DNA of 64,000 bases, taken from positions 66,278,001 to 66,342,000 of the forward strand of contig NC_088853.1 in assembly GCF_963853765.1 (NCBI RefSeq), given 5' to 3'. The notes beneath the pieces were generated by a model. That model ran no database searches and had not been told where the DNA came from. It saw nothing but the letters and a program-made list of their open reading frames with translations. The position numbers and the translations under genes were made by a program. Position 1 is the first letter of the stretch; the number at the start of each line of letters is the position of its first letter. This document shows, in pieces, positions 1,209 to 62,342 of this stretch. The stretch is from Magallana gigas (taxonomy: Eukaryota).

Positions 1209-1436
1209 CCCATGTCTTGTTCTCTGTCCTAAAATATATCACAATGCGATCTAACCGATATATATCTTTCAGATCAACTCGCCAAATTGCTTTAGTATCC
1301 GGTAAAGTTGCTGAACATTGACCACCGCGAAACGTCCGATCAGATTTCCGGTTATCAACTGCCTTCTCTGAACTGGAAGCGCCAGATCGCGTGGAAGACT
1401 GATATGTTGGTTTCCAGAGAGCTAGATTTTCTAGAT
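1209..1436 (-). CDS. Gene A FTP3 N-half exon (tandem acceptors at 1436 and 1430)
   Basis: LENLALWKPTYQSST...KAVDNRKSD...QCSAT...WRVDLKDIYRLDRIVIYFRTENKTW|gtaag. Confidence 0.85.
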
Positions 1437-4400
1437 CTAACGATAAAAACAAAGATGCATTATTGCATTGAACTAGAGTCTCGTGGGAATCGAAGAGCAT
1501 CCGTTCAATATACAAAACTCATAACTTTTAAGAAAAGCATAATAATTTGCCAACAAAAACATGACAATTACTGCAAAAAAACGACTGTATAGGATTATTA
1601 ATCACATATCATGTTTAATATTATTTACATGCATCTAGGATATCAGTTATTGACCCCAATTTTGTTTACAAATCGTTCAGTTCACTTTAACGTTTAAAGT
1701 AGAAAAAATATAGTACAATATTGCATGATTTAGTATAGAAAATAGCTGCATGTCTTTTACTTGGGACTCGTTTATAAACTGTTTGAAATAAATTGACCAA
1801 TCCTAAAAGATCTTACAATTTTTGCAGCTAGAGAAGCAAGGGACAGCACAATGCGGACCGTCGAATCCAGGAATTGGACAACCTGGATACAAAAAAAGGA
1901 AGGCAAAGTATCGCTAGTTTTGTATATAGAAACACACATTTGTGCGAAAAGGCTATAAATATTGTGAATGATGCTACAACAAACAAAAATCCAAACAATA
2001 ATTACCATACACTTCGACTTCACACAGAGCTGACTGGGCGTATTGACTGTAACCAGCTGGATAGCTAATGTCCGGGAGTCTTTCATTGTAATACGAGACA
2101 TATTGACCAATCACAGGGCAGCTTATATCGAATGAGAAAGGTATAGTTGACCTTGTATGGTTTGTGTCTTTGTAGCAGACGACACCCTCATTTTGATTGG
2201 TGGAGTTAGAAACTGTTAATGTAAAGCCCAGAAGAAGTCCTGTATAATTATTTTTCCCATCTGAAATTTTAGAAAAACGTGTCATTCTTACATGTTATTA
2301 TCACTGTTCTTTACGTTGTCAAGATACATTGTTACAATCCAATATAACAGAAAATGAGGATTTAAAAAAAAAAAAAGAATTACTGGCTAATTTATGAAAA
2401 ATAACGACCTGCTTTGTAAGTTCAGCTGAAAGCAATACAAATTAACCAATCAGCCATTTGAAAATTGAGTGATAACTAGAACATGATTGAATGCCCGAAA
2501 TCTACGATTCAATAACACAATGAAGATATTTGGTTAATGGAACTATAGGAATTTATTCCGACTTATAAAATGTTTGCCAAATTCTTATTTATACTCTGAT
2601 ATTATGTAAACGTTGGCAAACATCGTTCAAATTCTTTTTTTATTTAGAGCTAGTGGATTGTTATTAATGACGCTACGTTAATTCGAGTGAACCTGTGGTA
2701 AAAACTTAACAAAAGATGTGAAAAAGAAACATTTAGATTCAGTTGCAAAATTTGAATTGCATTTATCGTAGATTTTGCGTTAGTTAAATGTAAGCAGTAT
2801 TCAAATTTATATTTTTAAGTTATATCTTACATAAGACAAAATAAGCAATAAACTAATCATAACGTATGCATTACAAAAAAGAAGGCGTATATCTTAAATT
2901 TAAATGATGATTATTTGCATATAATTCATTATAAAGTCACAATTTAAAAGAAAAAATAAACGTTTAAAATACCTATCGTATTGTTGCGTGGGGGAATCAT
3001 ATGGTATATATATGAATTTGTTTAACTAACCAAAAACGCGTTAATATCAAAAATAAAATAAAACAAAATGATATCCATATACATGTAGTAAAAATCATAG
3101 TACACAAAAATCACTAACCCCATAAAAATCACTAACCCCATTTGGAAACAGAAGTCAAAGCTTGTAAGGTAAGCCTTTCAATTTTACGCCTTTGCAGGAG
3201 GTCAACTCTCCAGAGAGCGTAGTTTTGATGCTCTGATGTCACAGCGCAATGACCCGAATACAAACTCTGGTCATTCTTTTGACCATCAACAGCAGCCTTA
3301 CTTCCGGTAGTACTAAAAAATGTGGAGGACTGGAATGTCGGTTTATGTAGGGCTAGATTTCCTAGAAAACAATTGTGTAAAGTTATATTAAAATAGCTGT
3401 GGATATATAAGTGTAAAAAGTGAAATGTACACTTTCTATCAGTTGTCTATTTTCTCTAGGTATGAAAGTTAATTATGAAAAAAAAAACAAAACTTAAAGG
3501 ATGTGAGAAATAATCATTTTGAAGAGAAAAAAAAGCTCATTTGATCATGAAAAGTAAAGAAAATTACCCCGATCGTAGAATTTGCACTGTTCACCATAGT
3601 ATCCTGGGTTGCAGGCTCCAATACATTCCCCAGTTTTGGGGTTACAGTATTGACAATTATTTGGACAAGGTTCGTCACAATACGGTCCTTTGAAGCCAAG
3701 TTCGGGGCAGCCTTTTTAGGCAAGAATACAAACAAGATTACTTATATACTAAATAATTGATTAAAGGAATATCAGGTTTAGATTTTGAGATTTTATTAAA
3801 TACTAAAAAAAATTATACGCATCATTCTCCAACTTCGTAAAATGTGTAACAAATATTGTACGCAGTTTAAAGACAAAAATGTTTCACATACAAAACTGTA
3901 ACACAATTATTTTTGCAAATGTTGCATGAGATAATAGAGAAAGTTATATTGTAATGAAAGTAAACTAGACTACTCTCTATGTATATCAACTAACCAAACA
4001 CTTCGACTTCACACAGTTCAATGTATGCTTCCTTTGAATAAGTGGGCTTCTGGGTCAGGTTTCCCTCTCTCGTGTTGTAATATATCACGTACCGGCCCAC
4101 AACTTGACAAGAGATGTTCATGACGCTTTGTATGGAGCTGGCATCATTTTTGGTATCGTGAAAACAGAGGAACCCATCATCTTTGTTTGTTGTATTGGAT
4201 ACGTAAACAGAAAAACCCAGGAATCTGCTCGCATACTTGCTGGATTCTAGATCAATCAATTATAAAATTCTTAACATATTTGCACAAACTTGTGTTTAAG
4301 GTAATGACCCATACCTTATTAATAAAATCAAATACATTATTTATTAAATTTTACCCATTTGGCTGGTCCATCGGTTTTTAAAGCTAGGGCCGTAATTAAA

Positions 4401-6479
4401 AATATAACCGATTGTGGAAAATAGTGGTGTTTTTATTCAAACATTAAGAATATTAGCCTAAGCCTGAAATTTGACTTTCAGAAAATCGGTTTTGACTGAT
4501 ATCTTATGTAAAATGAACAAATGAATTTTACGAAACAATTTATCTTATACCAAACTTGCCTATTTATTAAAAAAACCCAGATAACATTGCTTACAAATGA
4601 AATGATATGATGCAAACGTTCAAAGAGAGTTTTATCTATTGCAATTTTATATGCGTACAGATTTCTCTGAAATGTTGACAGTGCTTGTTTACTTCTAAAG
4701 GCCCTTAATCAACTGTAAATAAAATTACCCAAATATATCCTCGTCTTGATCACAGAGTAAAGTGTATTTTTGGTCAAAATCATTAACATAAAATTTTTGG
4801 AAAAGATTTCCTAAGAATAATACTGTGCAAAAGGTTGTTATTTCATCACCTTTAAAAAGGTTAAGCTTATTGTAAACATAATTTGAACAAATCTTTGATT
4901 TATTTTTATTATTTTAATTGCAACAGAAGTTTTCTTTGGATATCGGTACATCTTTTTAGAAATTACCGCTACTTAGAAAACGCTGTTTACCCGATATGCT
5001 TTCTAGACAAAATCTCTATTCAACATGTTTCCTGGTTTTAAGGATTGTTCTTTTCATAAGCTATAACTCAAATTCTAAAACACACTTCTTCTTGGAAAGG
5101 GGGTTATACTTATTCTCGTTGCTTAACAAAAAGAACAGATATGATATTCTAGTAATTAAGGGTATAGAATGAAGATAGAATTGTTTAAGAATAAGGTCAA
5201 TTTTTTTCCCTCTTTTTGTGTATTTATCTTCCTTATGCACTTGAATCGATCATGGTCAGGATTTATTTTGATGATTTTGAACTTTCAAGAAAAAAGTTTA
5301 AATATTCAACTCAACCTTACAAAATAATGACATTTATACAGAAAAAGGTAATGGTCTATATTTTAAAAACGAGTACCCAATCGTGTCATGTTTGTATTGC
5401 GCTGATCAATAACAATTGATTGCAGTTGTCGAGATTGTTAAAATAAGTGTTTTAAATCAATTTCTAGGTTAGCCTGGTTAAACTAAACCTATTTATCGTT
5501 AGGTCTTCATTAGATTCCTCACGGACAAGACGATATGCCGCCTGAATTACGTCCGACGATGTTTTTGTGATTTATTGATAATTACATTCATTTGAGTGCA
5601 TACGCAATTTTATGTATCTCTTTGATCACCGTACGGGTAAACAATGTTATTAATATCTATATATGATAGGGTACCTTTAAGAGATTCTTTTTAGAACACA
5701 TTTAATACAGAGAGTAATGCTGACCATTCTTAACCACTTAANNNNNNNNNNNNNNNNNNNNNNNNNNNNNNNNNNNNNNNNNNNNNNNNNNNNNNNNNNN
5801 NNNNNNNNNNNNNNNNNNNNNNNNNNNNNNNNNNNNNNNNNNNNNNNNNNNNNNNNNNNNNNNNNNNNNNNNNNNNNNNNNNNNNNNNNNNNNNNNNNNN
5901 NNNNNNNNNNNNNNNNNNNNNNNNNNNNNNNNNNNNNNNNNNTATGTTACTACAATTGATAATAATAACAACAATGTTAACATCAGAAGACTCACTCCAC
6001 GTCTTGCCCTCTGTCCTGTAATATATCACGATATTGTGTATAACTTGAATAGACTGGAGGTCCACCATCCAAGTGGCGCCGTGTGGTGTCCCGTCAGAAA
6101 TAGCACATTGGTTACCGGCCGCCGAACGGCTAGACTTTAGATAATCTACAGCCCTTTCTGGAGGATAGATGCTAATGCTTGGTATCTGCCAGGTTGGCCT
6201 TTTGTAGGCCAGATTATCTCAAATTATAAAAATTAAAAACAATGCATCTTAAAAATAACTATTGCTGTTAAATGTAACAAATCATCTCATATTCAGAAAC
6301 CCAGAAACGTCGGTTAAGACGTAAAACCTTTATATTTTTGCCATTGAGTAATATGTTGAACATTTGACAGCGTTACACGAATGAGTGTGAATGTAAATCA
6401 AATAATACTTACAAATACAATCTGTTAAGGAGATCAATATAAGAGTCAGGAAGAAATAAACATATGTCCGTACACCCAT
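1209..6479 (-). CDS. Gene A: spliced, signal-peptide-bearing tandem F-type-lectin-like (FTP)/EGF mosaic protein, SP-FTP1-EGF-FTP2-halfEGF-FTP3(N-half); 3' end not resolved in window
   Basis: Exons with GT/AG boundaries: 6413-6479, 5996-6217, 3995-4246, 3568-3711, 3137-3361, 2006-2260, 1817-1882, 1209-1430/1436. All joins are phase 1 and give one open frame with FTP motifs (NLA..KP..Q, AVDG, WxVDL, YN.R, LCEVEV) and EGF cysteine spacing. Confidence 0.85.
1817..1882 (-). CDS. Gene A half-EGF linker exon
   Basis: cag|GCPIPGFDGPHCAVPCFSSCKN|gtaaga; 66 nt; read-through hits TAG at 1803-1805. Confidence 0.65.
2006..2260 (-). CDS. Gene A FTP2 C-half exon
   Basis: LLGFTLTVSNSTN...GQYVSYYNERLP...ALCEVEVYG; 255 nt. 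Confidence 0.9.
3137..3361 (-). CDS. Gene A FTP2 N-half exon
   Basis: NLALHKPTFQSST...AAVDGQKND...HCAVT...LWRVDLLQRRKIERL...KW; 225 nt; absent from the ORF track because there is no ATG. Confidence 0.9.
3568..3711 (-). CDS. Gene A EGF-like exon
   Basis: GCPELGFKGPYCDEPCPNNCQYCNPKTGECIGACNPGYYGEQCKFYDR; 144 nt. Confidence 0.9.
3995..4246 (-). CDS. Gene A FTP1 C-half exon
   Basis: SRFLGFSVYVSN...GRYVIYYNTREGNL...ELCEVEVFG; 252 nt. Confidence 0.9.
5742..5942. other. Assembly gap (N run)
   Basis: 201 N. Confidence 0.99.
5996..6217 (-). CDS. Gene A FTP1 N-half exon
   Basis: NLAYKRPTWQ...RAVD...NQCAIS...TWMVDLQSIQVIHNIVIYYRTEGKTW; ag/gtgag; 222 nt. Confidence 0.9.
6413..6479 (-). CDS. Gene A exon 1, signal peptide
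   Basis: MGVRTYVYFFLTLILISLTDCI followed by T|gtaagt donor. Confidence 0.75.
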
Positions 6480-10149: not shown

Positions 10150-11192
10150 TGGTTTGTTTTTATTTATTTTTTTGTTCCATTTCTATTTTTCAATTAAGTG
10201 ATTATTTTCGTTTAAAAACTTTAAAAGTGTGCAAGTTTGAGTTTGCGGAAAATTAACAATAAGCTGAAGTTAAAACAGACGCTCGACAAGTATTCATGCA
10301 GGTCAGACTAAAATGTCAGCAACTCGAAACAAGTGCACCGTATCCTTTGCCTCAACTGAAGTCACTTGGTTGTTTGATTTACAGACAAAAGACAGTATCA
10401 TGAGATTGTGTTATACCACGTGATCTACATTTGATGTGCTCATTTAATTCCCATGAAAGATTGATTTTCGGAAATGGACCAATAATAATGGTGTTTTCTA
10501 ACCCATCGCCATTGCTCGGATATAGAAAATACACAAATCATTCCATAAACATCGTATACCATCGCGAATCATAAGTGATCGTATATTTATACAATTTTAA
10601 GGGAATACATTTTATTTGTATGGTATACATGCATGGAAAAGTAATTCATGAAAATAAAAAGACAAAAATGTACGATTGCAACATTCTAAAACATAGCAAC
10701 TGCAATATGTTGAATGATAAATATATATTCAAATACATTGGTCAAATTGTTTAGGTAATTGTTGATCTTTTTTTCTTATTTCAATCCCGAACATTTTCAC
10801 ACTATTACTAAAACTTTTTCAATGTGACCAAGCATGATTATGAAAATCTAATATTAAGAAAGTATTTTAAAGACAAACCTAAGCAGATTCTAGGCCAAAT
10901 TTAAATCAATCTAAAATATAGAATCAAAGCTGATTTTGGACTTTTCTAAACTACAAGTACGATGTCTCAGACGATCTAAACTGGTATATAGATTGCCATG
11001 TGCGCAGCACTTAAGATATATTTAAGAGGAATAATAATAACTTTTGATATATTTAAAAAACAGTAATTTTGAAACATTTGTGCTAAAATCGTGTTTAAAA
11101 CCCCTTAGAACCTGTGTTGCTATTGCTATTTGCAGACAGGCTATATATTCTTTATATCAATCATTTTTTACACATGTTGTACCCAACTTATA

Positions 11193-17974: not shown

Positions 17975-18552
17975 TATACAAATTTTATATAACGATCATA
18001 TTCAATACTTATTTTAAAGAATAAAATATTGCCTAAAGATTAAAATTATAGGTGTATAGTTTTAAGAGAAAAACTGCAAAACATCACATAGACATACTTA
18101 CTTGCGTTGCCATTTCTTCTCTCTTCAGAAATTAACTACGGTGAGTGTTTATCTATTTTTACGCAAAATAAGTTTGTGATTTTCTTTAAAATACATCTGT
18201 TTTACTGTTATCTTGGCTGTGTTTGTTGTCTTAAATAATTCTTTACTTATTTTACAAGAAAAATGTAAACACTAACCTATGAACAAATTGTTGGCGTCCG
18301 ATGTACCCACTTAAGTACAACTTGGTACACATTAAATGATCAATGTAGTCATTCCTTGGCACATTTTATAATTTATATGGGTTATTGTTACTTTGAGGTA
18401 AACTTGAAAATATACAATTTATGAGCCAAGCGTCATATTTCAAAACAAATGTCTTATGTAATGTTTTGAATACTATTTTGATAATTAATAATCAAATATT
18501 AAATCTCTGATTACTATACCATGATTAAAAAATAATTAAATAGATTATGTAC

Positions 18553-18690
18553 TTTTTTGACAGAAGTATCCTATCCAGCCACGACGGCAGCCATAATCAC
18601 ATGAACCACTGACATCGTTACAGCCATCACACGTGTAACTGTTGATACAAGTCTCAGAACAGTCTTGTCCAAAATATCCAACGGGGCAAA
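18553..18690 (-). CDS. Gene B EGF exon 7
   Basis: CPVGYFGQDCSETCINSYTCDGCNDVSGSCDYGCRRGWIGYFCQK; 138 nt; donor gtacat. Confidence 0.85.
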
Positions 18691-23653: not shown

Positions 23654-23684
<31 letters not shown>

Positions 23685-23777: not shown

Positions 23778-23809
<32 letters not shown>

Positions 23810-23843
23810 ATAAGCGGTTTTAGAGAAGAAGTTCAAAATGTAA

Positions 23844-42636: not shown

Positions 42637-42638
42637 AA

Positions 42639-44365: not shown

Positions 44366-44367
44366 AA

Positions 44368-45693: not shown

Positions 45694-45695
45694 TG

Positions 45696-46727: not shown

Positions 46728-49700
46728 TGTTTCGCCCTGACGGCCCCCAACTACTGCTGGAGGTTGAGACGCTTCTCTCCGGCCTCCCCGGGGTCCCCAA
46801 TGACATGTTCTCCCTAACTAATGGGTAAGCAGACCTAACTTGACTATCAACTGTGACACTCCGTGGTGCCGGAGTACTGAAAGTGACAATGTACCCCTGC
46901 CCCAGGGATGAGAGCGAGTGGCTATGGGTTCCAGAGGGCTCTGAACAAGAATGCATACCCCCCCCCCCCTGTGAGATGACAGATTCTCAAGCACAGACGT
47001 ATCTGAGACTGCCCAACCATACAAGGGTTCCCCCAGGGCACGGCCCCTTTACTCTGACGGGTATGGACCCCGACATGGCTGTCCGAGGCATTGGTTCCCC
47101 CACTGCCTCCAGCACCCCTGGGCCTGACACTACAATCCCGTGGTGTTCCCCATACCCACTTGGCTCAACACCCGGCCGCTGCCCCCTCAACCTGCCCCTG
47201 CCCAGGAGAACCACCCCCATGAGGGCCACCCTCCCCCATGCTACCTGGTGTCGCCCGGGCAGTGCCCACAGTGTTTTCAGCCCTGGGAAAGCTAGTATCC
47301 ACTGGGGTGCCCAGTGTCTACACTCCCCTGGCTCACAGACCGCGAGCTCACTCCTGCCTCTGGCGGCAGGTTATATTGTGCTTTATCCCTCGGACTTGAT
47401 CCCTGAGACCGAGTTCCCCCCCCAAGGACCCTGACATTCCCACCAACAGTTGTGTAATCTGGGCTAACTGGGATTCCATAGCTCCAACCCGTGCCTGCAA
47501 TTCAGACACACCTTGGTCCCCCCGGGCAGACTCTCTGGTTTTAGGTCTGGCCATAATTACAGGGTCCCTTTGTCCTGCTCCAACATTAACCTGTTCTCCC
47601 TCAGCTGTCCCAAATACATTTGCTTCCCTTACAGCCCCACTTCTGTTCACCTCCCTAGTAAGGGACACATTTACTTTCCCTACCACAGTGCTATCCTCAA
47701 CTGTCCGGGCCTGAGGAGTACTGTAGACCGGTGGCCTAAATGGGGTCACAAATCCGAACAGTTGGTCAAAACTGTCAGGTACAGGGCCCCCCATGGCATC
47801 CATATCCCTTCCCTGGGCCCCAGCTAAGCCAGCCGGCTTAGCTCCATTGCCCCCTGGGACACCCATGCCACTCCTTTTCCAGGAACCGCCCCTACCTAAC
47901 CCAATTTTCCCCCACAACCAATATCAACAAATGTATGATTCACAGCTTCACAGCTAGTCACCGCCGTTGCCTAGCACGGCTATTTACATAAGCAAAAATA
48001 CAATTTAACTTTACAAAAAATTAAACATTACATATAATGTACAGAAGTAAACACATGGCCTAACCCCGCGGTGTCCCTTAGGCACAAGCCATAGGTGCAA
48101 CAAGCCAACAAATCAATTATGTATAAAATAATATGTTCTGGTGATTAAAGTCAAGGACTTACACTATCTGATTATCTCTGGTGGCTGCGCGTGGCTAACT
48201 CCACGATGTTCCCAGAAAATGACAAAAACCTGCGAACTCGGGACGTCGAGCCCGACACAAAAACAAAAAAGAAATACCCCCCCCCCCCAAACACACTACA
48301 ACACCTCGAGTACACCTGTTCAGACGTCCAAATATACACAGTTAGTTGTAAATTACAATGGCACCTTACAAGAAAGACAATAACACCTCTTGTGTATAGA
48401 ACCCAGATGAAAGGCAATGTTGTGTATCTGATCTGCTTCCGTACACGTGTATCGCACGAGTGATTTTTGTTCAAGTCATGACGTCATTACCAGCTATGCG
48501 GGAAATAAAGTTGAAAGTTGCTGTTATTTTATGAAATGCAGGTAAATTTTTAGTACACGTACAATGCTTGAATATAATTTAACAAGAGTTTGTACATGTA
48601 TGTATCTATAATCTATAATATTAAAGTGAATTTTTTTGTTTATTTATTGCTACATAACTAGCTGAAGTACTAATCATTCAAGTCACCGGTAATATGGGGT
48701 TATTTACTACAGCACATCCACATGTATTTAAAATAAACATGACCTGAAATATTTTCATTTCTCATTTTTAATTGGTTTAAAGTAAGGCTCTAAATTAATA
48801 AATCAGAAAGTGTTTTCAGATAACAGAAAATAAGACGTTTAAGCTCCCCACATTTTAATAGGACCGCCAGTTACAACATCACGTGTTTAGAAAAAAAAAC
48901 CCGATGAATTAAATTGATTTGCATTTTGATTATATATCAATTGACTAATACATATACTTGGTGAATTTATTTCAATTTATTAAAGAACAAATGAATTAAA
49001 AGGTACCCATTTACGTCGAGTTTTCAGATCACCAAAAATTAACTTTACTTTGAAAGCCCCTACAATTTCCAGGGTCCGTGCAACTTAAGTCGACATTCTG
49101 TTTTTTTTTTTTAATATGAAAAGGATATATATGTTTCAACCCTTTTTTAGCCATTATTTATTTATTTCTAAACATACACTATTTCAATCAACGTCTCAGA
49201 AAAACGAGATCCACGGAGTTACATGGGTGGCCACGGTGCGACACGGTGTTTTGTATTGAATTTTCCAATACACATACACTGTGTCACACCGTGTACACGG
49301 TGCAACACAGACAGTTTTCCACCGTGTTTTTTGCAAGGTGGGTGTCGGGATACTCGTGACCTGTACTGTATCTTTGTTGAAATATTAAGAACTTTACAAT
49401 AAGTGTTAAACATATTTAGAGTGGTATAGACTAATTTTGTCCCTATATACATGCAACTGTATCTATGAGCTGCATATGTAATTCCCTTAAACCAAACCCT
49501 TTCTCAGTCATTTACCTATTTTCGACCCTATCAGCTAGGCGTTCCTCTCTATCACAAGCTTAGCTAACTATCGTAAGTTTCTATTCATCTTTTTTCTCTG
49601 TTCTCGCTGCCTTTATCCAGGTTCTAGCAGCATCTCTCTCAGCCTATATCATGAGCCAAGCTTACTACAGTATGATCCCGCTCATCTGTTTTCACTGTTC

Positions 49701-51769
49701 TCGCTGTTTAAGTCCTAATAGTATTTCTTTCAGCAAGCATTGCCCCCTGCTCGAATAATTCCGCACCTTAATTATTGACGCCTAAGCTATTTTTGATATG
49801 TTTGGTCATCCATTCTGGCATTTGCGACGTTGTGAAAAAATTTACACTCAAACATACACAAACAAAATGTGATAAAAAAGAAAAGAATTAACATTCCTCG
49901 GTAGGAAAAAAATGTTGACTTATACAAGCCCAATGTATTAAAACACTGCAGCTGCCATGATGAGGCTGTGAGGGCGTGTGCTTTACACCCCGATTGACTT
50001 AAACAAATCAAAGAGAGCTAACAATGAACATTTTAGAAACACGGATTATAAAAAAGTGAAAACAAACAAAGAGAAAATGAAACAACAGAAACGTAAACCA
50101 ACTAAATTATCAATTGATATATGAGGAATGATAAACGAACGTAAAATTATTACATACAATATCCTTGGCTATCTTTTACTCGCACACGTCAAAACAGCAA
50201 TGTTTATATAGCTTTAACAGTTAATAAACTTGAAATGGCTACACTGAAAACAATGAAATTCTGTGCTAAATTCAGCACATATTGACCCTTTGAAATTTAA
50301 AAGGAAAATTAATTAGCATTGAAAAGAAATATTTTTTTAACCAACCAATATAACTGAAAGCACCTGTATAATAGCAACACCATATTGTTCTAAATGAAGA
50401 TCAACCGTGCATGCCTGATATTACAAATTCAATATTGGAGATTAAATATTTGATACCACCGGTATCAAAGGAACATCAGCTTGTTTATATACACTTGCCT
50501 ACAAATAAATGTTTCTTTGACTATGGTTAAATGATCACAAGTATGAATTATTTCGCGCAGAACGAATACAATAAAATTTGTAAGAATACAATGTACTTTG
50601 CATATTTTAGTGATATTGCTCGCCTCGTGTGTACCCCCTCCCCCCCCCCCCCCCCCAACCTCAAATACTCTTTTACCCGGCGTGAACATGTGTATTTTAC
50701 CTTTAATACATGTGCGTTTGTGGAAGCTGGATAGGAAACAAATTAGCCATCCTTTCTACCTCAAATTTTAAGATATGATTCGTTTAGCTTTAAACTATTA
50801 TTAAGTAATGAAAACAATTCATACATTGCACTTTTTAAATATAGGTATTTTCTAATATTTTTATATAGTGCTGATCTTTTAAAGAAGATCAATACTGTTT
50901 AAGAATGGGAACGGCCGTCGAGCATTCTTAAATCCGCTGTGTGTAAGTAAAGAGAAATTGACCAATGAGAGTCAATCAGATCAGATCTACATTGATTTAT
51001 TCATTTTGTTTTATAAAGATTCTTTTTTTCTGAAATAAAATACTTTATGAGGCTACTTTTGGCATTGTTTTTAATATAGAATAACAATTAAATTACAGGT
51101 GTAGAAACGATAAGTTTGGGTCGTTAATTCAAGCGCTAAGCAAATCTAAGCGCTTAAATGTCGTAAGACTTCTACTTCCGGTGCAACGAAGAACCACCCC
51201 CTATGAGCAGAAGTTAACTAAATTTAAACTGGTTAGGGAAACAGTTTCAGGCGTTTGTACACGCTAGTACGGACTATTGTGAATTTTAATGTACGTGGCT
51301 AACATACATCATTGCACGCGCTGCCACGCAGTGATGCGGAAATGTATTGCGTATACAGAAGCTGAAACGTTATATACATATACCTTTTCTATACAAACAG
51401 AAGCTGGGTTAGCGCTATTCAGTACTATCAGTACTTTGATTAATTATTAATATTGCATATACCGACTTGTGTATGCCTACTTGTCATAAATGTAAAGACG
51501 TTGTATGTGAGTTTACCATTACCATTGAGTGGACTTATGTCAAACTCTTGTTGAAGACATTCTCTTCATTTAAGATGTTTTATTCATTTTATTAACTTTT
51601 ACACCTCACTTTTGATTTAGTTGACTCACTAGAATTGAAGGTTTACTCTATGACATTTGTCACTCGTGTTTGATCCAATCGCAGCGTTTAAAACAGGCGC
51701 TTGTAAAAAGAAAAAAAAACTTTAGAAGAAACACATGTGAGTTATTTGGTAAAAAACATTCAGGCGCAC

Positions 51770-52860
51770 AATATTCAATTGATTATAATAAACAAAAATT
51801 CACATTAAAGGGTATTATTTCATAGAAGTACAATAAGAAAAGAATGCCTGACAAATAGTTTGGACGGTGCATTTTAAGAATTCCAAGGAAAGTATGATAT
51901 TGGCGTTGTTCTTCCTAAAGTGATTCTCATTGCAGGTTCATAGAATCGTTTTTTAATGTTGGGGAGGGTCAAATTTATCTAAAAAAAAAACCTTGACAAG
52001 CAAATAAAAAACCAAACAAAGAAGAAGTAAGTTTCAAGACCATAAAAAACAACTGCGGGGTTGGTGTGGGGTAGGGCGATTTTGGGGTGGGGGTGCAGAG
52101 CATATCTTTAACTTCATATAACAATTATCTTGCTGTTAGTTTCCTTCCTTTCAATTCATTTTTTTACACCCCCCCCCCAAAAAAAAAGTGGGAGGCCGTT
52201 TCCATTTTAATCACCTTTTTACATCTTAAATAAAACACAATGTTTGCTGCGAGAAAGAGCAGGGGGAGGGGTGGTACAGGCCGTACTGCCCCCCCCCCCC
52301 ATGCTACGCACTTTCATTGAGATGATGCAAGCTGTTTGTAATTGAAAAATATATTTAACAGTTTTGTCCAGTGGATCTGGTTATTTAATAAGCAGTTTAG
52401 AATTATATTACGAAGATATTTGGCGATTTGGTTCCGTCTTCGTACAGGCTATTTACAAGGGAATCAATAAAAGTACATGTATTGATCATTATATTCAACG
52501 AGAACAATTGGTTTATATAACATTAAAAAGACGGAAATAAACCGACACAAGCACACATTAAACAGATATTTACTGTCATCATCTTAAATTGCTCAATAAA
52601 TCCATTTAATATTAACAAGCAAAAAGCAAAAAAAATAAAAAAAAAAAAATAAAAAAATAAAAATTAAACAGACTTAATCAAATATCTTACTAACAAAAAT
52701 ATAAGCAATGTTTTGTTGTTCTAAGTGACAACATTCGAAAAGCAGTTGTAATCATTTTTTATAGCCGTTACATTTAGATACATATTTATAAACAGCACTA
52801 TCACAAATCGGTATTTCGTAGATTTTTTTTTCTAGATATGTTAAAAAAAAATACAGTTAT
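51770..52860 (+). repeat. Dispersed copy of the 33.5-34.5 kb repeat
   Basis: Colinear blocks from attcaattg..aaacaaaaattcacattaaagggta to cactatcacaaatcg. Confidence 0.7.
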
Positions 52861-53528
52861 ACCCTATCACCAGAGCAGGATATAAAGTCAAAACCTGCAA
52901 AAGAGCAAGACTGTCATTAAAAAGAGAGAAGACAGACCTGTTGAAATATCAAATTTTACATTTCTTTGTGTTTTCGATTAAATTCACATTAGCATAACCT
53001 GACACAATAGGAATTAATGTTATAAAAACATACAAAAGAAAGAAAAAAAAGGAAACACGCCAGACCCATTTTTTTTTACATTGTACGCTACATTTGATTC
53101 CGTTATTTTTCTAATAATATTGACCTCTTGAAATTTAAAAGCTTTCTGTTGATAACACAAAGATATAGAATCGCATGCATGTATTTTCACATACCGTGTC
53201 ATTTAATATGGTAATATTTATTAGTTATACATGTAGGAGAACATGAGGTCTGTTAGCTACCTTATCTAACCTCCATTGAGAAACCTTTACTGCTCAATGC
53301 GGTTGCAGAAAAAAAAATAAGTGATTTATGTGTTAACTCGATGTACCCTGGTAATGTTCTTTAAAGGTTTTTTTTATTGGTTGCAAATATTGTTGTTGTT
53401 GCATAGTAACGTCACAGTGAAAAGTGTTTATCCACAGGCATCAGCAATAAACAGTGATCATATTGCTATACATTGTAGTTTAGTTGAAGGGGAGGTACAG
53501 ATGTCACTGTGTTGATATAAAACACATC

Positions 53529-53530
<2 letters not shown>

Positions 53531-53580
<50 letters not shown>
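53531..53580. repeat. (CT)n microsatellite (others at ~34597, ~35503, ~37446, ~38372)
   Basis: Pure CT run. Confidence 0.95.
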
Positions 53581-53583
<3 letters not shown>

Positions 53584-54045
53584 TGTAACGCAGCAGTAAA
53601 AATTGTTCATCTACAGGCATCATTAAACGCTAATCTTGTTAGTGTATTTAGACATTTTGTTGACGGAGAGATACAGATATCACTGTGTATGTGAGACTCC
53701 TTTCGTCTGCTCTAAGAGAAGTATTTGTACTTGTACTTATCCCAGGTGATTATTTTTTTTTATGATCCACTGAAAAATTTCAAAATTCGGTTAACATTGC
53801 GTTGTGTCTAAATTATTCAAAACTTTCACAATAATATGTTTTGTTATTGATTTGCAATAAAATGTGATTATTAGCATCGTGTTTATGTTTCATATACTTC
53901 AAAAACACATTATATCATCGTTATAAGTGCTGATAAAAAAAAGAGAAAAAAACTTTTAAAAAATAAATTCTGACGGCAGTGAAATTAGTAATAGTGATTT
54001 ATCAGAGAGTGCAAATTTGTGAGAGCCGGCATTCTTATTAAAACT

Positions 54046-54109
54046 ATGATGCCGTTAACTTGTGTCTTGCTTACTCTGGTTGTATTTATGCCTAATCTAA
54101 TGACGGGAT
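54046..54109 (+). CDS. Gene C exon 1, signal peptide
   Basis: MMPLTCVLLTLVVFMPNLMTG + T|gtaagt. Confidence 0.8.
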
Positions 54110-57100
54110 GTAAGTACACGAATTACTAACTTGTTTTGCAATGCTTTACTTTTGATCGCACGAATGTTCATTTTTTCTTTACATTTGTAAACAAGTGATT
54201 TTTTTCATTTGTTTAAATTAAGGTGTTTTTTCTTTAAAAAACTGTTATAAAATACTGTCTTTTTCTATGTTTACCATATTAAACAGTATGTCTTAAATTA
54301 CCTCATAACACTTATGAACGACAATATCTTTTTAGAACATATATTAAAAAATCCTTAAGTGTAGTTGTTGTATTTTTTTCCTCGTTAAATAAAAAAAATG
54401 GTAAAATGATATATTTTGTGAGTGTTAAATTTGACTGGTACTGTTCTTATATCAAGATTTGTTCGTTATCATTTAACAAAATAATTAACAATATATGTCT
54501 AATATACATTATGCTCTAATTAAACCAAATCTTAGCACATTTAAGATATTACTGTTAAATAAAAATTGTGAATGTGATTTTTTTTTTACTTATGAACCCA
54601 AAGATAACCTAGCGTATAAAAAACCGACATGGCAGACACTTGACAAGTATTCGTCGGACAAGGCAGTGGATGGACTGTATACTAATCTATCAGCAAATGG
54701 AAACCAGTGCGCCGTATCTTTTGCCTCGTCTGAAGTCACGTGGTTAGTTGATTTAGAGACAATAAACAGTATCAGTAAGATTGTATTGTACCACGTGACA
54801 GAGGGATCTACATTTGGTAAGCTCATTTCACTTTTATAAAGTGTTTCTTTCTTTCTACTTACGAGTCTTTTTTTTAACAAATATTAAAGAAAGCACACGC
54901 AACCAACTGGATAATTCATAAATAAACATTAAATCTGTACTTTAAAAAATATTACTACAATGATTTTCTTTTAAGTTTTGTTATGATATCGATTTTGGAA
55001 ACAGTGAAAGGTATCCATCTAACACAGATTTGGGCGTTTTTGTGGTCCAGAAAAAATCTTAATGACTTCATTCCCATGTTTTTATGATTCAGAAAACTTT
55101 TGAGGGATTGAGTGACACACAGAAACAGCATATAAAACACATTAAATTGATAATTTCATCTTTTTTATTCCTGTTTTTGTATTTGCTACTTTCTAATAGT
55201 TTGCATAATGCTTCAATGGATAAGAATAACTTGGGTTTTTTTCAAATTTTACGTTTGATATTTTCAGCTATGCTACTACGTTTTACCAAAAATTGAAGGT
55301 TAAGCAACTATCTGAATTATTTCAAAATTTCATAAAGATTAACCAGTTTCCGTCATTGTTTTCTGTATTACTTTGATTGTTTTGAACATCAAATGTAAGA
55401 AACAATGTTTAACGCAATGTCTTTTTCATTTGGACGGGGAATATTAAGAATTATGTCATTAAAATTTATTTTTACATCGATGAATACATAAAAATCTATT
55501 TTCTTTTAAATCTTCAATATCAGTGGTTATTGCTGTTCTTTAAAAGATAATATAAGATGATTCCATATTGTACATTGACACCTACATTCNNNNNNNNNNN
55601 NNNNNNNNNNNNNNNNNNNNNNNNNNNNNNNNNNNNNNNNNNNNNNNNNNNNNNNNNNNNNNNNNNNNNNNNNNNNNNNNNNNNNNNNNNNNNNNNNNNN
55701 NNNNNNNNNNNNNNNNNNNNNNNGCATAAAAAGGAGTTGATATATATATATTGAATGGTGTTTTGTTAAATTCAGAGCGATTGGTATGCTGTTACTTTTT
55801 TCATAATATGTGAATAGTTGGTGTAATATGTATATACAAATAAATAGTAACCTAAGTTTTATTTAAAGTATTAGATTTTACTTTTTGGGTATCAATGAGA
55901 TATATTATCCTGTTTTATACACACAAAGCTGACAGCGTCTATGCAAGCAGATTCCTCGGTTTCTCCGTATATGTATCAAACTCAACCAACAAGAAAGATG
56001 GAGTCCTGTGTTATCACGACACCAACTACACGGTATCAACCATTACGTCTAGGATAGCCATTGAGTGTATTTCCCAAGGCCGCTATGTGATATTCTACAA
56101 CACAAGAGAAGGGAACTTGTCATTGAAAATTGGCTATTCTGATAAAGTGGAGATTAGTTTATGTGAAGTTGAAGTATATGGTAATATTTATTATCTTTAT
56201 ATTTTTTTCTTATATTATCCTTCATCTTTATGACTAAAAAGGTATATCTTACTTCTGTTTCTATCTTTTGCGAAAACAAAACAAAATTTAAAAAAAAATC
56301 AGAACTGTGTCTTTTTATAGTAATTAATATATAAAAGAATACAAAAATGTCATCATTTCATGAGATATCAAGCAATCATAATATGATCATATTCTTTTAA
56401 AAATCATACATGTAATTTCAATTCATGTGTAGCTAATATGACACATTTTGTAAATACTGGACGATTCTATATTTATGTATGCATCATCTCTCTGTACTGT
56501 CTTTGTTTTATTTTATAACAACAAGGATGTCCTTTGGGATTCTATGGCGGGGATTGCTTAAAGACTTGCCCAGTTAATTGTCACCATTGTAACTACGAAT
56601 CTGGAAAATGTCTCGGAGGCTGTCGCCGTGGTTTTTCCGGACACTTTTGTAATTCTTATGAACGAAGTGAGTTAGTTTAGTTGTTTTTTAATGAATTCTT
56701 TTTGAACTGCTATAAGCCAGCTTTCATTCACGTGAGAAAAATGTTCTTGAGACTTTCGTCGATGCATCAATTTTCTCGCCCCGAATCACTTATTGTCTTA
56801 TGGTTGATTTAGCAAAACAGATATTCGAAATGCTTGTCGCAAAAATAAGTCGCAGAGTACCATTAATGTCTGGTAAATCGCAAATGAATGTCGTCCTGTA
56901 TAAAAGTTGTTGGGTTACCGAAATTGAAATAGCATTGTAAAATAATTAATTTTTGTTTGAAATGTACCATCTTACTAAAAATGGCAGAAAAATAGTTCGT
57001 ATCGTGCAAAAAAGTTGTCTAGGTGAAGTAACTAACGTAAAAATAAACGTATTAGTCTGCCATACATGACGTTTGAAATTTGTGAAATCATACCATTTAA

Positions 57101-60100
57101 GCCATCACTTGGCCATTTTAATAAACAATTAATGGCTGATAATTAAATTGTAACGAATTAACGTAATAGCTTCCAAATTTACAAATATGAGATAAGTTGA
57201 AATAGTTTAATTCTTAAAAAGCGCAGACAGACCAATCAATTTTATATTCGAATAAACTTGTAAGCTGTTGATTTTATTCCCTATACAAAAATTAAAATTG
57301 AAAAACGATGTTTTTACGACTGTTGACTTCTATAATGCCGTTTGAAACCCAGTGACTTTTATTCATGATAAACAACATTTTTACATTCTTTAGATATTAT
57401 AAAAGTGAAATATTCTAATTTATATGAATAGTGTCCTAAGGTTCATATCAATAACACATCGTTATGTTTTTCCTATTCAGTTAATTTGGCATTACATCGC
57501 CCGACTTTTCAACTACATACACTGTTTGACGGACAACCAAGTTCCAGACTCGTTGATGGTAAAAAGAGTGATCTGAGTATATACAACGGTCAATGCACCT
57601 CTACTAAAAACGGCCAAACGTTTGTAATGTGGAGGGTGGATTTAGAAAAACTTCGTCGCATTGAACGTATTGTTGTTTACTCCAGAACGGATAACAGAAT
57701 ATGGGGTGAGATAAATAAATCTGTTATATTTCTCTTTGCATTAAATGTATAAATCAAATATACACATAAACAAATGAATATTCATATATTATTATTTTGC
57801 TTAAAATTAAATGATTTAAATATATTGTTTTGACAGATGGAGATAACCAATTTTCAAAAAGATTACTAGGATTTTCAATTATTGTTTCGAACACCACTAA
57901 CCACAAAGATGGCGTCATTTGTTTCCACGACCAAATATACAACAAGAATACAATACCATCGGTGGTGGATATTCTCTGTTCCGTCGTTGGACGCTATGTT
58001 ATATATTACAATGAGAGACTACCAGGAGTCACATACTATGCAGAACATAGTCAATATGCTTTTGCTGACCTCTGCGAAGTAGAAGTTTACGGTACCTACT
58101 GATGATATCAATAAAACAAAAAAAGGTGCATACTGTCTTTACATTTAAACTAGATAATTTGTAATGTTTATTTTCAGGTTGTCCTTTAGTCCAGAGTAGG
58201 TTTCAAGACGAGGCCTGCAGACTCATGTGTCTCGAAATGTGTAGGAAGGGTGAGTATATACGCTTGCTTTATTACAATTATTCTTTCTGTAGTTGTAAAT
58301 AAAATACTTTTAAGTGTAATATATCTTGAAAAAGATATTTGCATTATAAATAAAAACAAATCATTCAAATACACAAAAACAGATAAAACGAACTTTAAAA
58401 AATTAAAGTATTTTGGAATCATTTAAGTTTGTTTGGCCAAATTGTGTGGATTCCTTGAAAATTACAAATTTGGAAAGGAGATTATTTCTTGTTTTATCTT
58501 TGACCAACAAAATAAAAAATGATTGTATAACCCTACAAATTAATTCAACATGAGCCATAAAATCCGAGCCATCAGTTTAATATTTAAATATTATACTGGA
58601 AAGGGACATTGATGGCAATATAACAACATCAGTTTGTGAAAAACGTGATGACTTAAAATATATATCAATATACCTTCATCACCTGTATATGGAGATTTCG
58701 TATCTAAGTTACTGCGATACGCAAAGACATGCTCCTGGTATGAATAGTTTTTACATGAGGCAATCTACTGTCAAACAGGTTGATGAAAAAAGATCTATCA
58801 ACAGTCTCGATTGAATTCATTACTTTATATAACCAACGCTTAGTAATACAAACAATGCAAACACATATAAAATAAGCTGGTGTTTTGGAATGTCTTGATC
58901 GCCTTAGAAGGATATCAAAAATACTCCACAGACTGTAACAAATTATTCAGCAGGATCAACATACTATACACTGTCCTAAGTTTTTTCTTCCACCATTGTT
59001 CGGTTGATATTTCGATAATAATAATTACTTTTGTGTTCAGACTAGGTTCATCAACTGATATAAAAATGTCCAGATTATGTCTTGAAACGTCCCTTCGTTC
59101 GCTTCAGGGTTCAATATCGAACCCGAATGATATCTTTGATATTGTGCGAGGTATTTAGTGTGAGTTCCAAATTGTGAAACGATTGAAACATATCCAATTA
59201 CAAATCTTCGTAAGAAATTTGTTTTCGTTCATGAGAGTTTATTTGTCAATAAAGATACACGTATCTTGAATTTTTACTTTTATTGATTTCAACTGTATTT
59301 TTTTTCATAAGTATGTGCATTTTGATTAAACAATTATAAAAAAATGAGGGAAGAAAAACATGGGACATACTAAAGACGAACAGTTATTTTGCTACACGTA
59401 TGTTTTTTGTATTGATCGAGTTATTCCCATATGACAATATTTAAAACGTGGCATGGTTAACCACACGTCTGAGGAGGTACATGAAATAGACCATATCAAA
59501 AGTAGCATTTGATGTTGAAGCCAATCAGCTATTATTCAAGACCAGTTAAGACGACATTTTGATTCATCATATTATTTGCATATTTAAATGATCAACAAAA
59601 CGTTGTAACATCTTCGTGCAAGGTAAAAATGATCCGATGAAATTGGAGCACTAATACCCAACGGCAATTAATAAATGTCCGAAAGTACATTTACATCATT
59701 TTATCTGGAAAAAAAAAATATTTTAGAGCACCAGTCCAGTTTAGCAACTGGATTCACTAAGGAGAAGTTCCTCATTAATTAACCTATTAAATTGAAACAT
59801 TCGTGTACTTTCAATGTATGTAGAAAAACAGTTGGGTTATAGTTTAGGGGATTCATGAAGTTATACCGTGGTCATTTAAAAACAAATCATTAACACTCTC
59901 TATTCTGCAAAAAAGAATCAAAGGTTTTGTTTTTAATTTAAGATCTAGAAAATCTCAGTTACAAGAAAAGAACTTGGCAGTCTGCGACATATTCCTCTTC
60001 GGGAACAAGCGATAAAGCAGTTGATGGACGATATACGTCACGCCATTACTCAAGTGGACAGTGTGCTATATCAAAACCATCAACACAAATAACATGGTGG

Positions 60101-62342
60101 GTTAATCTGGGGAAAATATACACGATAGACCATGTCGTAATTTACTTCAGGACCGATAACGTACAGTGGGGTAATGCATATATAATTTATCTCTTTAATG
60201 TACAGTTTTGTTCTTAAAAATTGCACATGAATAATGGCGAAAACGTCATTATAATTAAGCCATTTTGTGTCACCAGAAAATGTGTAGTTGTTTATGCGGT
60301 TTCTTTTAATTATAATAAATTTGGTTTTATCTATTCAAAGAAAAAATAATTCCGATATTATATTACGTTTGTTTGTTATAGGAATAAACAATGGCTATAC
60401 GGCAGTTTTCCTAGGATTTTATTTGTACATTTCGAACACCACCAATCGTCATGACGGAATCCTATGTCACCACGATACAAATTACACAAGAGAAACCATT
60501 CCTGATCACGTGTCTATTGATTGTCCTTGCCATGGACAATACGTCATTTTTTTACAATGAACGTCTGCCCGGAGTTACCTACCCTTCCGGGTATTCAAAC
60601 ATGGCTTATGGTGACCTCTGTGAAGTTGAGGTTTATGGTAAATATTTTTTTTTTTGTGTCAAAAAATGAAGTGTGATTTAAGTGTTGAACATGTCATATT
60701 GTTTTTTTCTTTACCAAGGTTGTCCTAATCCTGTGGTCGAAGTTCCTCAGTGTTCTAAACCGTGTCCATCAAACTGTGAAGAATGTTACCCAGACACGGG
60801 AATATGTATGAAGTGTAAACTTGGTTTTGAAGGCTATGCTTGTGAAAGAGGTAACTATATCTTTGCAATTCAAGATGCAATTACATTTAACCTATATAAA
60901 ATATATTCATTTTATTTGACAAAAGCCATATTCTGTTCAAAGAAAGGCAGTTTAAGGTTATTTGAGGCTATACTTTTAATTTTCATCTCAAGGAACATCA
61001 CGCATTTACTCCTTTATTTTTGTTACAATTAAGAACATGACACTTTCTTTTAGAAGAATTTTTATCTAAAAATAAGTCATGTTTGATAGGACGTTTTGGA
61101 ATCAACATACAACTATCTTATTTCAGCCTGTCAAGCGGTGACCGACGTAAAAGTATCGTTACCAGTTACAATCGCCGGATCAGCATACGAAGCATTGTTT
61201 TCAAGCAAGGGATATTCTTTTCCAGAACATGGACACCACAATATGTCTCTTTTTTTGTCATTATCTGAACAGTCGACAAACCTTGTAAGCGTGTCCTTCA
61301 CAATCCATGGGGCATCGGTAGTCAGTGTGTACTTGTTGGATGGAATAGGCTCTCTAATCAGGATGGTTAGTATTCATAAAATTTGAATATGTGAAAACAA
61401 TCAATCAACATACAATCAACTAAAAGTAAAAAAACAAAGTTGAGAATAACGTAGACATTCTTATGTTAGAATAAAAGATTCAAGGATTTTTTTTTTGATA
61501 TATTTTGACGGGATCTAAGAAAACAAAAATTAACAAATATAAGACAGGAAAAAAAGTGCTATAAGAACCAAAAATGCTGCCTTAAAACATAAAAAAACAA
61601 ATACAAAACGAATATCAACAATTGTTCGATGTATATTTCATCTTTCATTTGGGGCTGAAAAGCATTGATGTAATTCAAATGATACTCTACCTATGTTTAA
61701 AATAATATATGTGATTTAATGTATTAACAAGTCTACGTAAATATGAATTATCTGAGGTGTTTTAATTATCTTTTTTACTTAGTATGTCGACGAGTCTATG
61801 GAATCTGAGGATGTAAATGTCACAGTTGTAAACAACATCATTGCTGAAGTTCATTCTATTATAATAGAAGTTGTGTATTACCATCAACTTGTCATCTCGA
61901 AATTGAGGCTGCCGGAGTGTAAATGCTTCAACTATATCAATAGCACGGTAAGTTTTATAGAATATATTGTAGTTGACATTTTTAATTGCTTTCATTTAAA
62001 AAATATATAATATGAATGAAAATATTTCTTTTTGCAAATGTACTTTCATAGATATTATGAATTTGAGATGACTTACTATATTAACTTCTTTTTTTTTTCT
62101 TTTTTTTTTTCGTTTAGATTTAGTGAGTTTAATTATAAGAATGTATTTAACTTTTCAAGAAGTAGTCAAGTTGTCCTAAGAATGAAATAACAATCATTAA
62201 GTCTCAGTATTATGCATCAAAACTAGGTTAAACAAAAGTGTTAAATAACATATTTCCTACCATTATTTCCTTTCATTTTTCAGACATTTTAACCAGTGGT
62301 GTGCATTTCAGCGAGAAATTATTAACAGAATTGATTTGTTAA
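54046..62342 (+). CDS. Gene C: probably secreted tandem FTP/EGF mosaic protein, SP-FTP1-EGF-FTP2-halfEGF-FTP3-EGF-unrecognised beta-rich domain; apparent +1 frameshift in exon 9
   Basis: Exons 54046-54109, 54604-54816, 55929-56180, 56526-56666, 57481-57705, 57837-58091, 58178-58249, 59943/59949-60170, 60382-60637, 60719-60850, 61127-61365, 61783-61918/61947, 62284-62292/62342. Confidence 0.85.
54604..54816 (+). CDS. Gene C FTP1 N-half exon
   Basis: NLAYKKPTWQ...KAVDGLYT...NQCAVS...TWLVDLETINSISKIVLY; 213 nt. Confidence 0.9.
55590..55723. other. Assembly gap (N run)
   Basis: 134 N. Confidence 0.99.
55929..56180 (+). CDS. Gene C FTP1 C-half exon
   Basis: YASRFLGFSVYVSN...GRYVIFYNTREGNL...SLCEVEVYG; 252 nt. 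Confidence 0.9.
56526..56666 (+). CDS. Gene C EGF exon 1
   Basis: GCPLGFYGGDCLKTCPVNCHHCNYESGKCLGGCRRGFSGHFCNSYER; 141 nt. Confidence 0.9.
57481..57705 (+). CDS. Gene C FTP2 N-half exon
   Basis: NLALHRPTFQ...VDGKKSDLS...QCTST...MWRVDLEKLRRIERIVVYSRTDNRIW; 225 nt. Confidence 0.9.
57837..58091 (+). CDS. Gene C FTP2 C-half exon
   Basis: KRLLGFSIIVSNTTN...GRYVIYYNERLPGVTY...DLCEVEVYG; 255 nt. Confidence 0.9.
58178..58249 (+). CDS. Gene C half-EGF linker exon
   Basis: ttttcag|GCPLVQSRFQDEACRLMCLEMCRK|gtgagt; 72 nt. Confidence 0.75.
59943..60170 (+). CDS. Gene C FTP3 N-half exon (tandem acceptors at 59943 and 59949)
   Basis: NLSYKKRTWQSATY...KAVDGRYT...QCAIS...TWWVNLGKIYTIDHVVIYFRTDNVQW|gtaat. 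Confidence 0.88.
60382..60637 (+). CDS. Gene C FTP3 C-half exon, +1 frameshift in the T7 run at 60547-60553
   Basis: Frame 1 gives FLGFYLYISNTTN...HGQYVIF, then the next frame gives YNERLPGVTYPSGYS...DLCEVEVYG; 256 nt versus 255 in paralogous exons. Confidence 0.85.
60719..60850 (+). CDS. Gene C EGF exon 3
   Basis: GCPNPVVEVPQCSKPCPSNCEECYPDTGICMKCKLGFEGYACER; 132 nt. Confidence 0.88.
61127..61365 (+). CDS. Gene C C-terminal domain exon 1 (unrecognised)
   Basis: tttcag|ACQAVTDVKVSLPVTIAG...LVSVSFTIHGASVVSVYLLDGIGSLIRM|gttagt; phase 1 in, phase 0 out. Confidence 0.7.
61783..61947 (+). CDS. Gene C C-terminal domain exon 2 (unrecognised)
   Basis: cttag|YVDESMESEDVNVTVVNNIIAEVHSIIIEVVYYHQLVISKLRLPEC..; phase 0 in matches the previous donor; possible donors gtaaat (after 61918) or gtaagt (after 61947). 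Confidence 0.65.
62284..62342 (+). CDS. Gene C putative terminal exon
   Basis: tttttcag| gives (Y)ILTSGVHFSEKLLTELIC* in phase 1 or TF* in phase 0. Confidence 0.35.

Follow-up and report, generated by a model that had tools for sequence, protein, structure and literature searches.

What do oysters build from exons that encode the fold of F-type lectins and epidermal growth factor (EGF)-like repeats? The question is raised by a 64,000-nucleotide (nt) stretch of the Magallana gigas genome (GCA_963853765.1, OY970745.1, approximately positions 66,278,001 to 66,342,000; hereafter the window), in which three genes, here called A, B and C, are assembled from the same exon modules. An initial annotation took them for a diversified recognition system, with soluble multivalent lectins and a receptor-like form. 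Oysters depend on recognition proteins from very large families particular to their lineage and, to our knowledge, have no adaptive immunity. The answer reached here, to which a probability of roughly 0.7 is assigned, is that the three genes belong to an oyster-restricted, heavily duplicated family and encode extracellular proteins built from phase-1 modules, A and C being putatively multivalent and B most likely soluble. What was observed directly is the exon structure, the linear splicing, the fold and the absence of the canonical fucose-binding histidine. If ligand binding by the domain heads can be demonstrated, the family would offer a tractable example of how exon duplication diversifies modular proteins.

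A shared set of phase-1 exon modules

Hidden Markov models (HMMs) were seeded with one N-terminal and three C-terminal open reading frame (ORF) fragments of the F-type-lectin-fold domain (FTLD) and iterated over all stop-to-stop segments. These self-trained models recovered seven exons for each half (E values from 1e-16 to 1e-49), besides an eighth, orphan N-half fragment, and a cysteine-density scan picked up the EGF-like exons between the FTLD halves. Each FTLD is encoded by two exons, an N-half and a C-half, and each EGF-like module by one; on either strand the order is invariably N-half, C-half, EGF. All of these exons have AG/GT boundaries at the homologous point and in phase 1, giving symmetrical 1-1 modules, and all seven FTLDs are split mid-domain after a conserved W/F-G. 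Phase 0 introns occur only inside and directly after a C-terminal domain, X, described below. The proposal that one exon toolkit was used in differing numbers and orders in three genes is thereby borne out by the HMMs and the splice sites.

The FTLDs of the window are 36-56% identical in pairwise comparison, and genes A and C are alike in DNA over a single 86-nt exon stretch only, at 79%. Recent gene conversion between the two was rejected on this ground; as judged by sequence, A and C are old paralogues.

The FTLD fold and its altered binding motif

Homology to the F-type lectins was supported by profile searches, by Pfam and by structure prediction. Against the PDB, an N-half profile matched FBP32 (1e-11), SpX-1 (9e-10) and AAA (5e-7), and a whole-FTLD profile of 71 domains matched FBP32 (2e-13) and AAA (3e-8). 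The only PDB entries matched by the two profiles (E 2e-13 to 6e-6) were F-type lectins, namely FBP32, AAA, SpX-1/3 of S. pneumoniae and the lectin domain of lectinolysin. Pfam family PF22633 was found on the whole protein in three stretches at 69.7 bits (cutoff 27.8); with single exons, N-halves fell just under the cutoff, and C-halves, EGF exons and X gave no match. An AlphaFold2 model of the second FTLD of gene C, taken from a 98%-identical orthologue, had a predicted local distance difference test (pLDDT) score of 97.1. Its Foldseek matches in the PDB at ranks 1-11 were all F-type lectins (TM 0.71-0.84, probability 1.0), ahead of CBM32 modules. On the evidence of sequence and modelled fold, the FTLD is a homologue of the F-type lectins.

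The binding motif has changed. F-type lectins bind fucose through the motif HX24RXDX4(R/K) (PMC5712786), the key residues of which are His52, Arg79 and Arg86 in AAA numbering. For the seven domains of the window, the residues aligned with His52 read V, I, V, A, V, S and I (T is also among the replacements), so the canonical fucose-binding histidine is lost in every one of them. Across the family, histidine stands there in only 2 of 71 domains and is missing in 69. An arginine equivalent to Arg79 remains in 51 of 71 domains, and 46 of 71 retain the acidic residue at +2. The next conserved arginine belongs to an R-F-L-G-F motif and, in the reference sequence of the alignment, comes 12 residues after the acidic one instead of 4. 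Where the triad is missing, a domain may bind with another specificity or no longer bind sugar (PMC5712786). Because the histidine is absent, a lectin function is a lead rather than a finding, and lectin activity should not be assumed for heads that lack the residue for canonical fucose binding. The original assignment to the F-type lectins therefore holds for homology and fold, and is not supported in the functional sense.

Gene C: transcripts, a frameshift and a twin copy

Gene C was modelled as 749 residues, gap-free, colinear and approximately 98% identical to Crassostrea angulata XP_052691414 (P0159). It runs from a signal peptide through FTLD, EGF, FTLD, half-EGF (the first four of eight cysteines), FTLD and EGF to the 136-residue X and a stop. 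Transcripts joining the exons had been named beforehand as the test of the gene models. Four public runs were mapped on 56400-62399, and RNA contigs contained nine GT..AG joints in linear order (56666>57481, 57705>57837, 58091>58178, 58249>59943, 60170>60382, 60637>60719, 60850>61127, 61365>61783 and 61947>62284); one RNA-seq contig of 1332 nt spans EGF1-N2-C2-halfEGF-N3. Apparent joints at 58028-58036>60611-60615 were rejected as splicing, being non-canonical with 28-40 foreign letters between their sides, and were read as paralogue contigs. The result is an exact, transcript-backed gene model for a subfamily that databases call "uncharacterized".

In the window, the third C-half of gene C is open only if the T7 run at 60541-60547 were T6, a +1 frameshift. 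T6 was found in contigs of three RNA-type runs, in one DNA run (31.4 of 40.2 depth), in C. angulata proteins including P0159, and in a twin copy of the gene. The RefSeq model at gene C (P0361) is a 270-residue stump ending at the frameshift stop near 60560; that the reference assembly cuts the gene at a homopolymer matters to users of its annotation.

The intact twin, with product P0360, lies 320 kb upstream (L002, OY970745.1:65,950,669-65,975,725). Its identity to gene C is 96.7-97.8% across 8 kb or more, introns counted, and 92% further upstream. More broadly, window positions 49998-64000 match this locus over at least 14 kb at 87-98% identity, as a segmental duplication or an uncollapsed haplotype. 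Between the exons of the two copies, 16 codons have changed, 10 of them synonymously and 6 non-synonymously, and the introns are 3.0% apart; this pattern indicates, at the sequence level, constraint by purifying selection since their divergence. Among the RNA-contig variants, several fit the twin rather than the window and others fit neither; one RNA-seq contig fits the window and not the twin at 57651. Because the variants partly match the twin, the exon structure is proven for gene C or its twin, and expression of the window copy is not; that copy is probably either mis-assembled at the homopolymer or a young pseudogene.

A separate patch of variation was seen in the third C-half at 60421-60451, where contigs of two runs (X1 and X2, RNA type guessed) carry six base differences in 31 nt that set them apart from both the window and the twin. 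With nearby changes included, five residues around this patch distinguish the old UniProt model K1QDV4 from the window. These variants may come from a third allele, or from a paralogue by gene conversion.

Gene A and the X domain

Gene A has the same layout as gene C (signal, FTLD-EGF, FTLD-halfEGF, FTLD-EGF, X). It runs 6.2 kb past the left end of the window, its third C-half, last EGF and X exons lying 2.4-6.2 kb beyond that end (locus L001). It is 92-100% identical per segment to RefSeq XP_065943139 (P0162) and 97-99% identical to a C. angulata protein where measured. The description of A and C as three FTLDs with EGF linkers thus stands for gene C and for gene A as a gene; within the window gene A lacks its third C-half, and that of gene C is frameshifted. 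No database model covers the predicted signal exon of gene A, the RefSeq model starting at an internal methionine.

X is a C-terminal, cysteine-bounded domain of 136 residues without a Pfam match. Its model (pLDDT 84) is a galactose-binding-like jelly-roll, with structure matches to IFT25 (Z 12.2), DOC domains, CBM32 and SpX-3 (Z 10.0). A degenerate FTLD was considered and rejected, since the profile-profile probability was 1.8% and no relationship was detectable by sequence, though the fold class is the same. X was found in 18 of 355 proteins retrieved, all from M. gigas or C. angulata, with one to three complete FTLDs or FTLD fragments, and the subfamily of A and C has so far been seen only in these two species. 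With the X region as sole query, a word-based search recovered nothing beyond the query itself and K1QDV4, and is uninformative on distribution. None of the 18 X-bearing proteins has a membrane span, nor was a hydrophobic span found in gene C, in keeping with the proposed soluble, EGF-spaced, multi-FTLD form of A and C.

Gene B

Gene B carries, as had been described, one FTLD on a stalk of seven EGF-like modules. Its 512-residue model keeps the reading frame open across 10 exons with canonical splice sites, and is gap-free and 86% identical to C. angulata XP_052691406 (P0268, "cell death abnormality protein 1-like"), the gene for which lies on the same 318-kb scaffold as the gene C orthologue. 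All seven EGF modules carry the 8-Cys pattern, and the orthologue's stalk matches Tie2 EGF repeats (E 2e-7). A TAA at 18545-18547, two codons past the last EGF, would end the protein if the last exon is not spliced onward.

A receptor of the MEGF10/SCARF/CED-1 type, as first suggested, is not supported. The N-terminus of gene B consists of signal and FTLD with no EMI domain, and Pfam found no EMI in P0268 or P0259. Hydropathy, motif and tblastn searches, the last with the tails of membrane-bound relatives, gave no convincing exon for a membrane span or immunoreceptor tyrosine-based activation motif (ITAM) from 18553 to 6480 and in 16 kb left of the window, and no NPxY/YxxL tail for gene B was found in the window. 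P0268 and the closest M. gigas paralogues (420-440 residues) end shortly past the last EGF, without a membrane span and with unconserved tails. A comparison of the P0259 downstream flank (L004) with that of gene B was uninformative, as blastn and tblastx missed even the shared last exon. On balance gene B probably has no membrane span (about two chances in three). Automatic names of the "MEGF10/CED-1-like" kind derive from EGF repeats only.

Range of the family

The C-half had only 694 matches at E <=0.001 among 1.84 billion representative proteins, and word-based searches returned 404 and 477 relatives; all those that are named belong to the Ostreidae (Magallana/Crassostrea, Saccostrea, Ostrea). 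The family is multi-copy and oyster-restricted, and these are not conserved single-copy housekeeping genes. Relatives are named "uncharacterized", "MEGF10/11", "draper-like", "CED-1-like" or "SCARF2", and some have a membrane span and ITAM-like tails (e.g., P0029, P0031 and P0046). Full-text literature searches found no description of FTLD-EGF mosaics in oysters, in agreement with the initial annotation, which could not name the architecture. The architecture is nevertheless already predicted in RefSeq and UniProt, for M. gigas and C. angulata, as "uncharacterized protein".

Module-skipping isoforms are annotated for a paralogue elsewhere on the chromosome, LOC105323786: compared with P0377, its RefSeq isoforms P0007 and P0373 show changes of entire half-domain modules, the third FTLD being without its C-half in one and the first N-half having an alternative donor in one. 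None were seen in the reads mapped to the window.

Interpretation and alternatives

The favored reading would make A and C secreted proteins with three or four rigidly spaced beta-sandwich heads. These could act as multivalent cross-linkers of an extracellular ligand, for example a protein or a glycan other than canonically bound fucose. Gene B would most likely be a soluble, single-headed form on an EGF rod, and the family may have grown by tandem and segmental duplication.

Several points weigh against this reading. The cross-linking role is read from the architecture, and the signal exon of gene A is a prediction. Window gene C has both its frameshift and, in X, PECKC in place of the conserved PLRxC (PLRKC) found in all relatives, and the partly twin-like RNA contigs leave its expression unproven. 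Gene B has no database product of its own, no database protein being at least 90% identical to it, and neither AATAAA nor ATTAAA occurs within approximately 650 nt of its stop. An annotated model with an 802-residue product, on the strand of gene B, spans all of L001 1-32255 (window 16068 to about -16187). It covers at least 32 kb, from upstream of window 16068 to beyond gene A, which would nest inside it. Gene B may thus continue into unseen exons, and the 802-residue model may be its extended form.

Some of these same points could instead reflect partial decay, with window gene C as a pseudogene copy of its intact twin and gene B as an unexpressed relic. The truncated RefSeq product, the clustered change in PLRxC, the lack of a close database match to gene B and an orphan N-half exon at 10.3 kb would fit such decay. 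However, the extra base lies in a T7 homopolymer, a typical long-read assembly error, and T6 dominates in the DNA run; the open frame and canonical splice sites of gene B, and the contig that fits the window at 57651, likewise speak against it. Decay is a tentative possibility.

Two other alternatives concern function. Diversified glycan recognition, with A and C as soluble multivalent fucose-type lectins and B as a MEGF10/CED-1-like phagocytic receptor in innate immunity or gamete recognition, can draw on real F-type lectin fold and homology, on strong family expansion in oysters and on the membrane-bound relatives with ITAM-like tails. Oyster bindin also shows that mid-intron-split FTLD arrays can serve gamete recognition (PMC5712786). 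It is nonetheless unlikely given the missing triad histidine in all seven window and 69 of 71 family domains, the arginine spacing of 12 rather than 4, and the lack in gene B of EMI, membrane span and NPxY/YxxL tail in the window, with P0268 and its closest paralogues also lacking the span. Alternatively, these could be structural or adhesive matrix proteins, with degenerate FTLDs and X as discoidin-like binders of protein or lipid instead of sugar (cf. the C domains of factors V and VIII) and family size reflecting tissue-specific matrix roles in place of recognition diversity. Loss of the triad is a hallmark of non-lectin domains of the F-type fold (PMC5712786), rigid EGF spacers and multi-domain secreted layouts are usual in matrix proteins, and the gene C copies have been under purifying selection. 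A matrix role is improbable, however, where the pocket is partly conserved, with Arg79 and the acidic residue kept in most family domains, and where the window FTLDs have diverged to 36-56% identity.

The favored reading, of extracellular modular proteins, can also be taken further. A and C would then be Magallana-specific, four-headed secreted recognition proteins (three triad-less FTLDs and X) with a pocket retuned to a non-fucose ligand. They would serve as soluble opsonins or bridging partners of membrane-bound FTLD-EGF-ITAM receptors elsewhere on the chromosome, their diversity replenished through duplication and the swapping of phase-1 half-domain exons. This extension is decidedly unlikely as a whole.

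Features of the locus

The modules of the three genes and associated features are collected in Table 1.

Table 1. Positions in the window of the modules of genes A, B and C, the assembly gaps and a relic exon.
Feature	Position	Strand	Evidence
Gene A FTLD3 N-half	1209-1436	-	HMM, splice sites
Gene A half-EGF exon, first 4 Cys only	1817-1882	-	Cys scan, splice sites, homologous protein
Gene A FTLD2 C-half	2006-2260	-	HMM, splice sites, homologous protein
Gene A FTLD2 N-half	3137-3361	-	HMM, splice sites; 100% to P0162
Gene A 8-Cys EGF-like exon	3568-3711	-	Cys scan, splice sites, P0162
Gene A FTLD1 C-half	3995-4246	-	HMM, splice sites; 98% to P0162
Assembly gap, gene A N1>C1 intron	5742-5942	.	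54 nt past N1 donor at 5996; P0162 joins N1-C1 directly
Gene A FTLD1 N-half	5996-6217	-	HMM E 3e-33; 92% to P0162/P0164
Gene A signal-peptide exon, predicted	6413-6479	-	ATG, hydrophobic core, phase-1 GTAAGT donor
Orphan FTLD N-half relic	10307-10408	+	HMM E 3e-16
Gene B seven EGF-like exons, overall	18545-27519	-	Cys scan, splice sites, P0268; stalk resembles Tie2 EGF
Gene B EGF exons 5-7	19245-19382, 18821-18958, 18553-18690	-	
Gene B EGF exons 1-4	27385-27519, 27046-27183, 25169-25306, 24363-24500	-	
Gene B FTLD C-half	27944-28198	-	HMM, splice sites, P0268 alignment
Gene B FTLD N-half	29775-30002	-	HMM, splice sites, P0268 alignment
Gene B signal-peptide exon	30831-30915	-	Near-identical N-termini in P0259 and P0268
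Gene C signal-peptide exon	54046-54109	+	Same residues open XP_052691420 (P0357)
Gene C FTLD1 N-half	54604-54816	+	HMM, splice sites, alignment to P0159
Assembly gap, gene C N1>C1 intron	55590-55723	.	P0159 alignment, splice sites
Gene C FTLD1 C-half	55929-56180	+	HMM, splice sites, P0159 alignment
Gene C EGF-like exon 1	56526-56666	+	RNA-contig joint 56666>57481; splice sites; P0159
Gene C FTLD2 N-half	57481-57705	+	RNA-contig joints, P0159
Gene C FTLD2 C-half	57837-58091	+	RNA-contig joints, P0159
Gene C half-EGF exon	58178-58249	+	RNA-contig joints, P0159
Gene C FTLD3 N-half	59943-60170	+	RNA-contig joints, P0159
Gene C FTLD3 C-half, extra T in 60541-60547	60382-60637	+	RNA/DNA contigs, twin L002, P0159
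Gene C EGF-like exon 3	60719-60850	+	RNA-contig joints, P0159
Gene C X domain, two exons	61127-61365 + 61783-61947	+	RNA-contig joints, translation
Gene C last exon, two codons + stop	62284-62292 (X region 61127-62292)	+	RNA-contig joint

The placement of the window on OY970745.1 is given by two genomic loci that are 100% identical to it where they overlap. It has a G+C content of 34% and two runs of N, the assembly gaps of Table 1. Both fall in the same intron of A and C, the one that splits the first FTLD, which may be chance or may reflect a hard-to-assemble repeat common to these introns. Neither breaks coding sequence, as orthologous proteins join the flanking exons without extra residues. 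The orphan relic is 59% identical to gene C residues 48-81 and has no partner exons nearby. To the left of the window, L001 25400-27300 (approximately 9.4-11.2 kb from its end) holds X-domain exons of another member on the strand opposite gene A, 90% identical to C. gigas LOC105334073 and tail-to-tail with gene A; the cluster therefore reaches beyond the window.

Introns of gene B contain (TA)n-type microsatellites (24584-24650 and 26330-26430). Between the genes lies a degenerate Ty3/gypsy-like long terminal repeat retrotransposon (41502-47917, minus strand), interrupted by stop codons and frameshifts. Its parts include a gag-like ORF (44557-45357) that encodes a CCHC knuckle, fragments resembling reverse transcriptase and RNase H/integrase (41502-42676), and long ORFs on both strands at 46.7-47.9 kb. 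A dispersed G-run repeat (VWGGGGG in ORFs) has five intergenic copies, at 36.2-36.7, 39.35-39.55, 41.1-41.3, 48.2-48.4 and 50.5-50.7 kb.

Comparison with known systems

The window FTLDs share with the F-type lectins (AAA, MsaFBP32, SpX-1 and lectinolysin) the jelly-roll and the core NxAxxGxAxQSS...AVDG...C...WWxVDL, and tandem domain arrays are known there too. Unlike those lectins, they have the histidine of the His-Arg-Arg triad replaced by Ile, Val, Ala, Ser or Thr, lack an adjacent Cys-Cys pair and have a longer Arg-to-Arg spacing. In the window proteins, moreover, FTLDs alternate with EGF-like modules, and in A and C an unrelated jelly-roll forms the C-terminus.

In oyster sperm bindin, between one and five FTLDs stand in tandem; a mid-domain intron interrupts each of them, and the basic triad is missing from some (Moy, Vacquier and colleagues 2008, in PMC5712786). 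It comes from the same species, and its tandem, mid-intron-split FTLDs resemble those of the window genes, the two being compared by description only. Bindin is encoded by a single gene copy whose alleles and splice forms are extremely diverse, and its description includes no EGF spacers or X (PMC5712786), whereas the window genes are multi-copy and their transcripts are spliced in plain linear order. No named relative in the word-based family searches is called bindin.

With MEGF10, MEGF11, CED-1, Draper and SCARF, gene B has in common runs of 8-Cys EGF-like modules, one per phase-1 exon. Unlike MEGF10, CED-1 and Draper, it has an FTLD where the N-terminal EMI would be, and neither a membrane span nor an NPxY/YxxL tail turned up in gene B or in the proteins closest to it. 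The membrane-bound FTLD-EGF relatives are built from the same FTLD and EGF exon toolkit; genes A, B and C differ from them in showing no membrane span or ITAM, and A and C in adding X.

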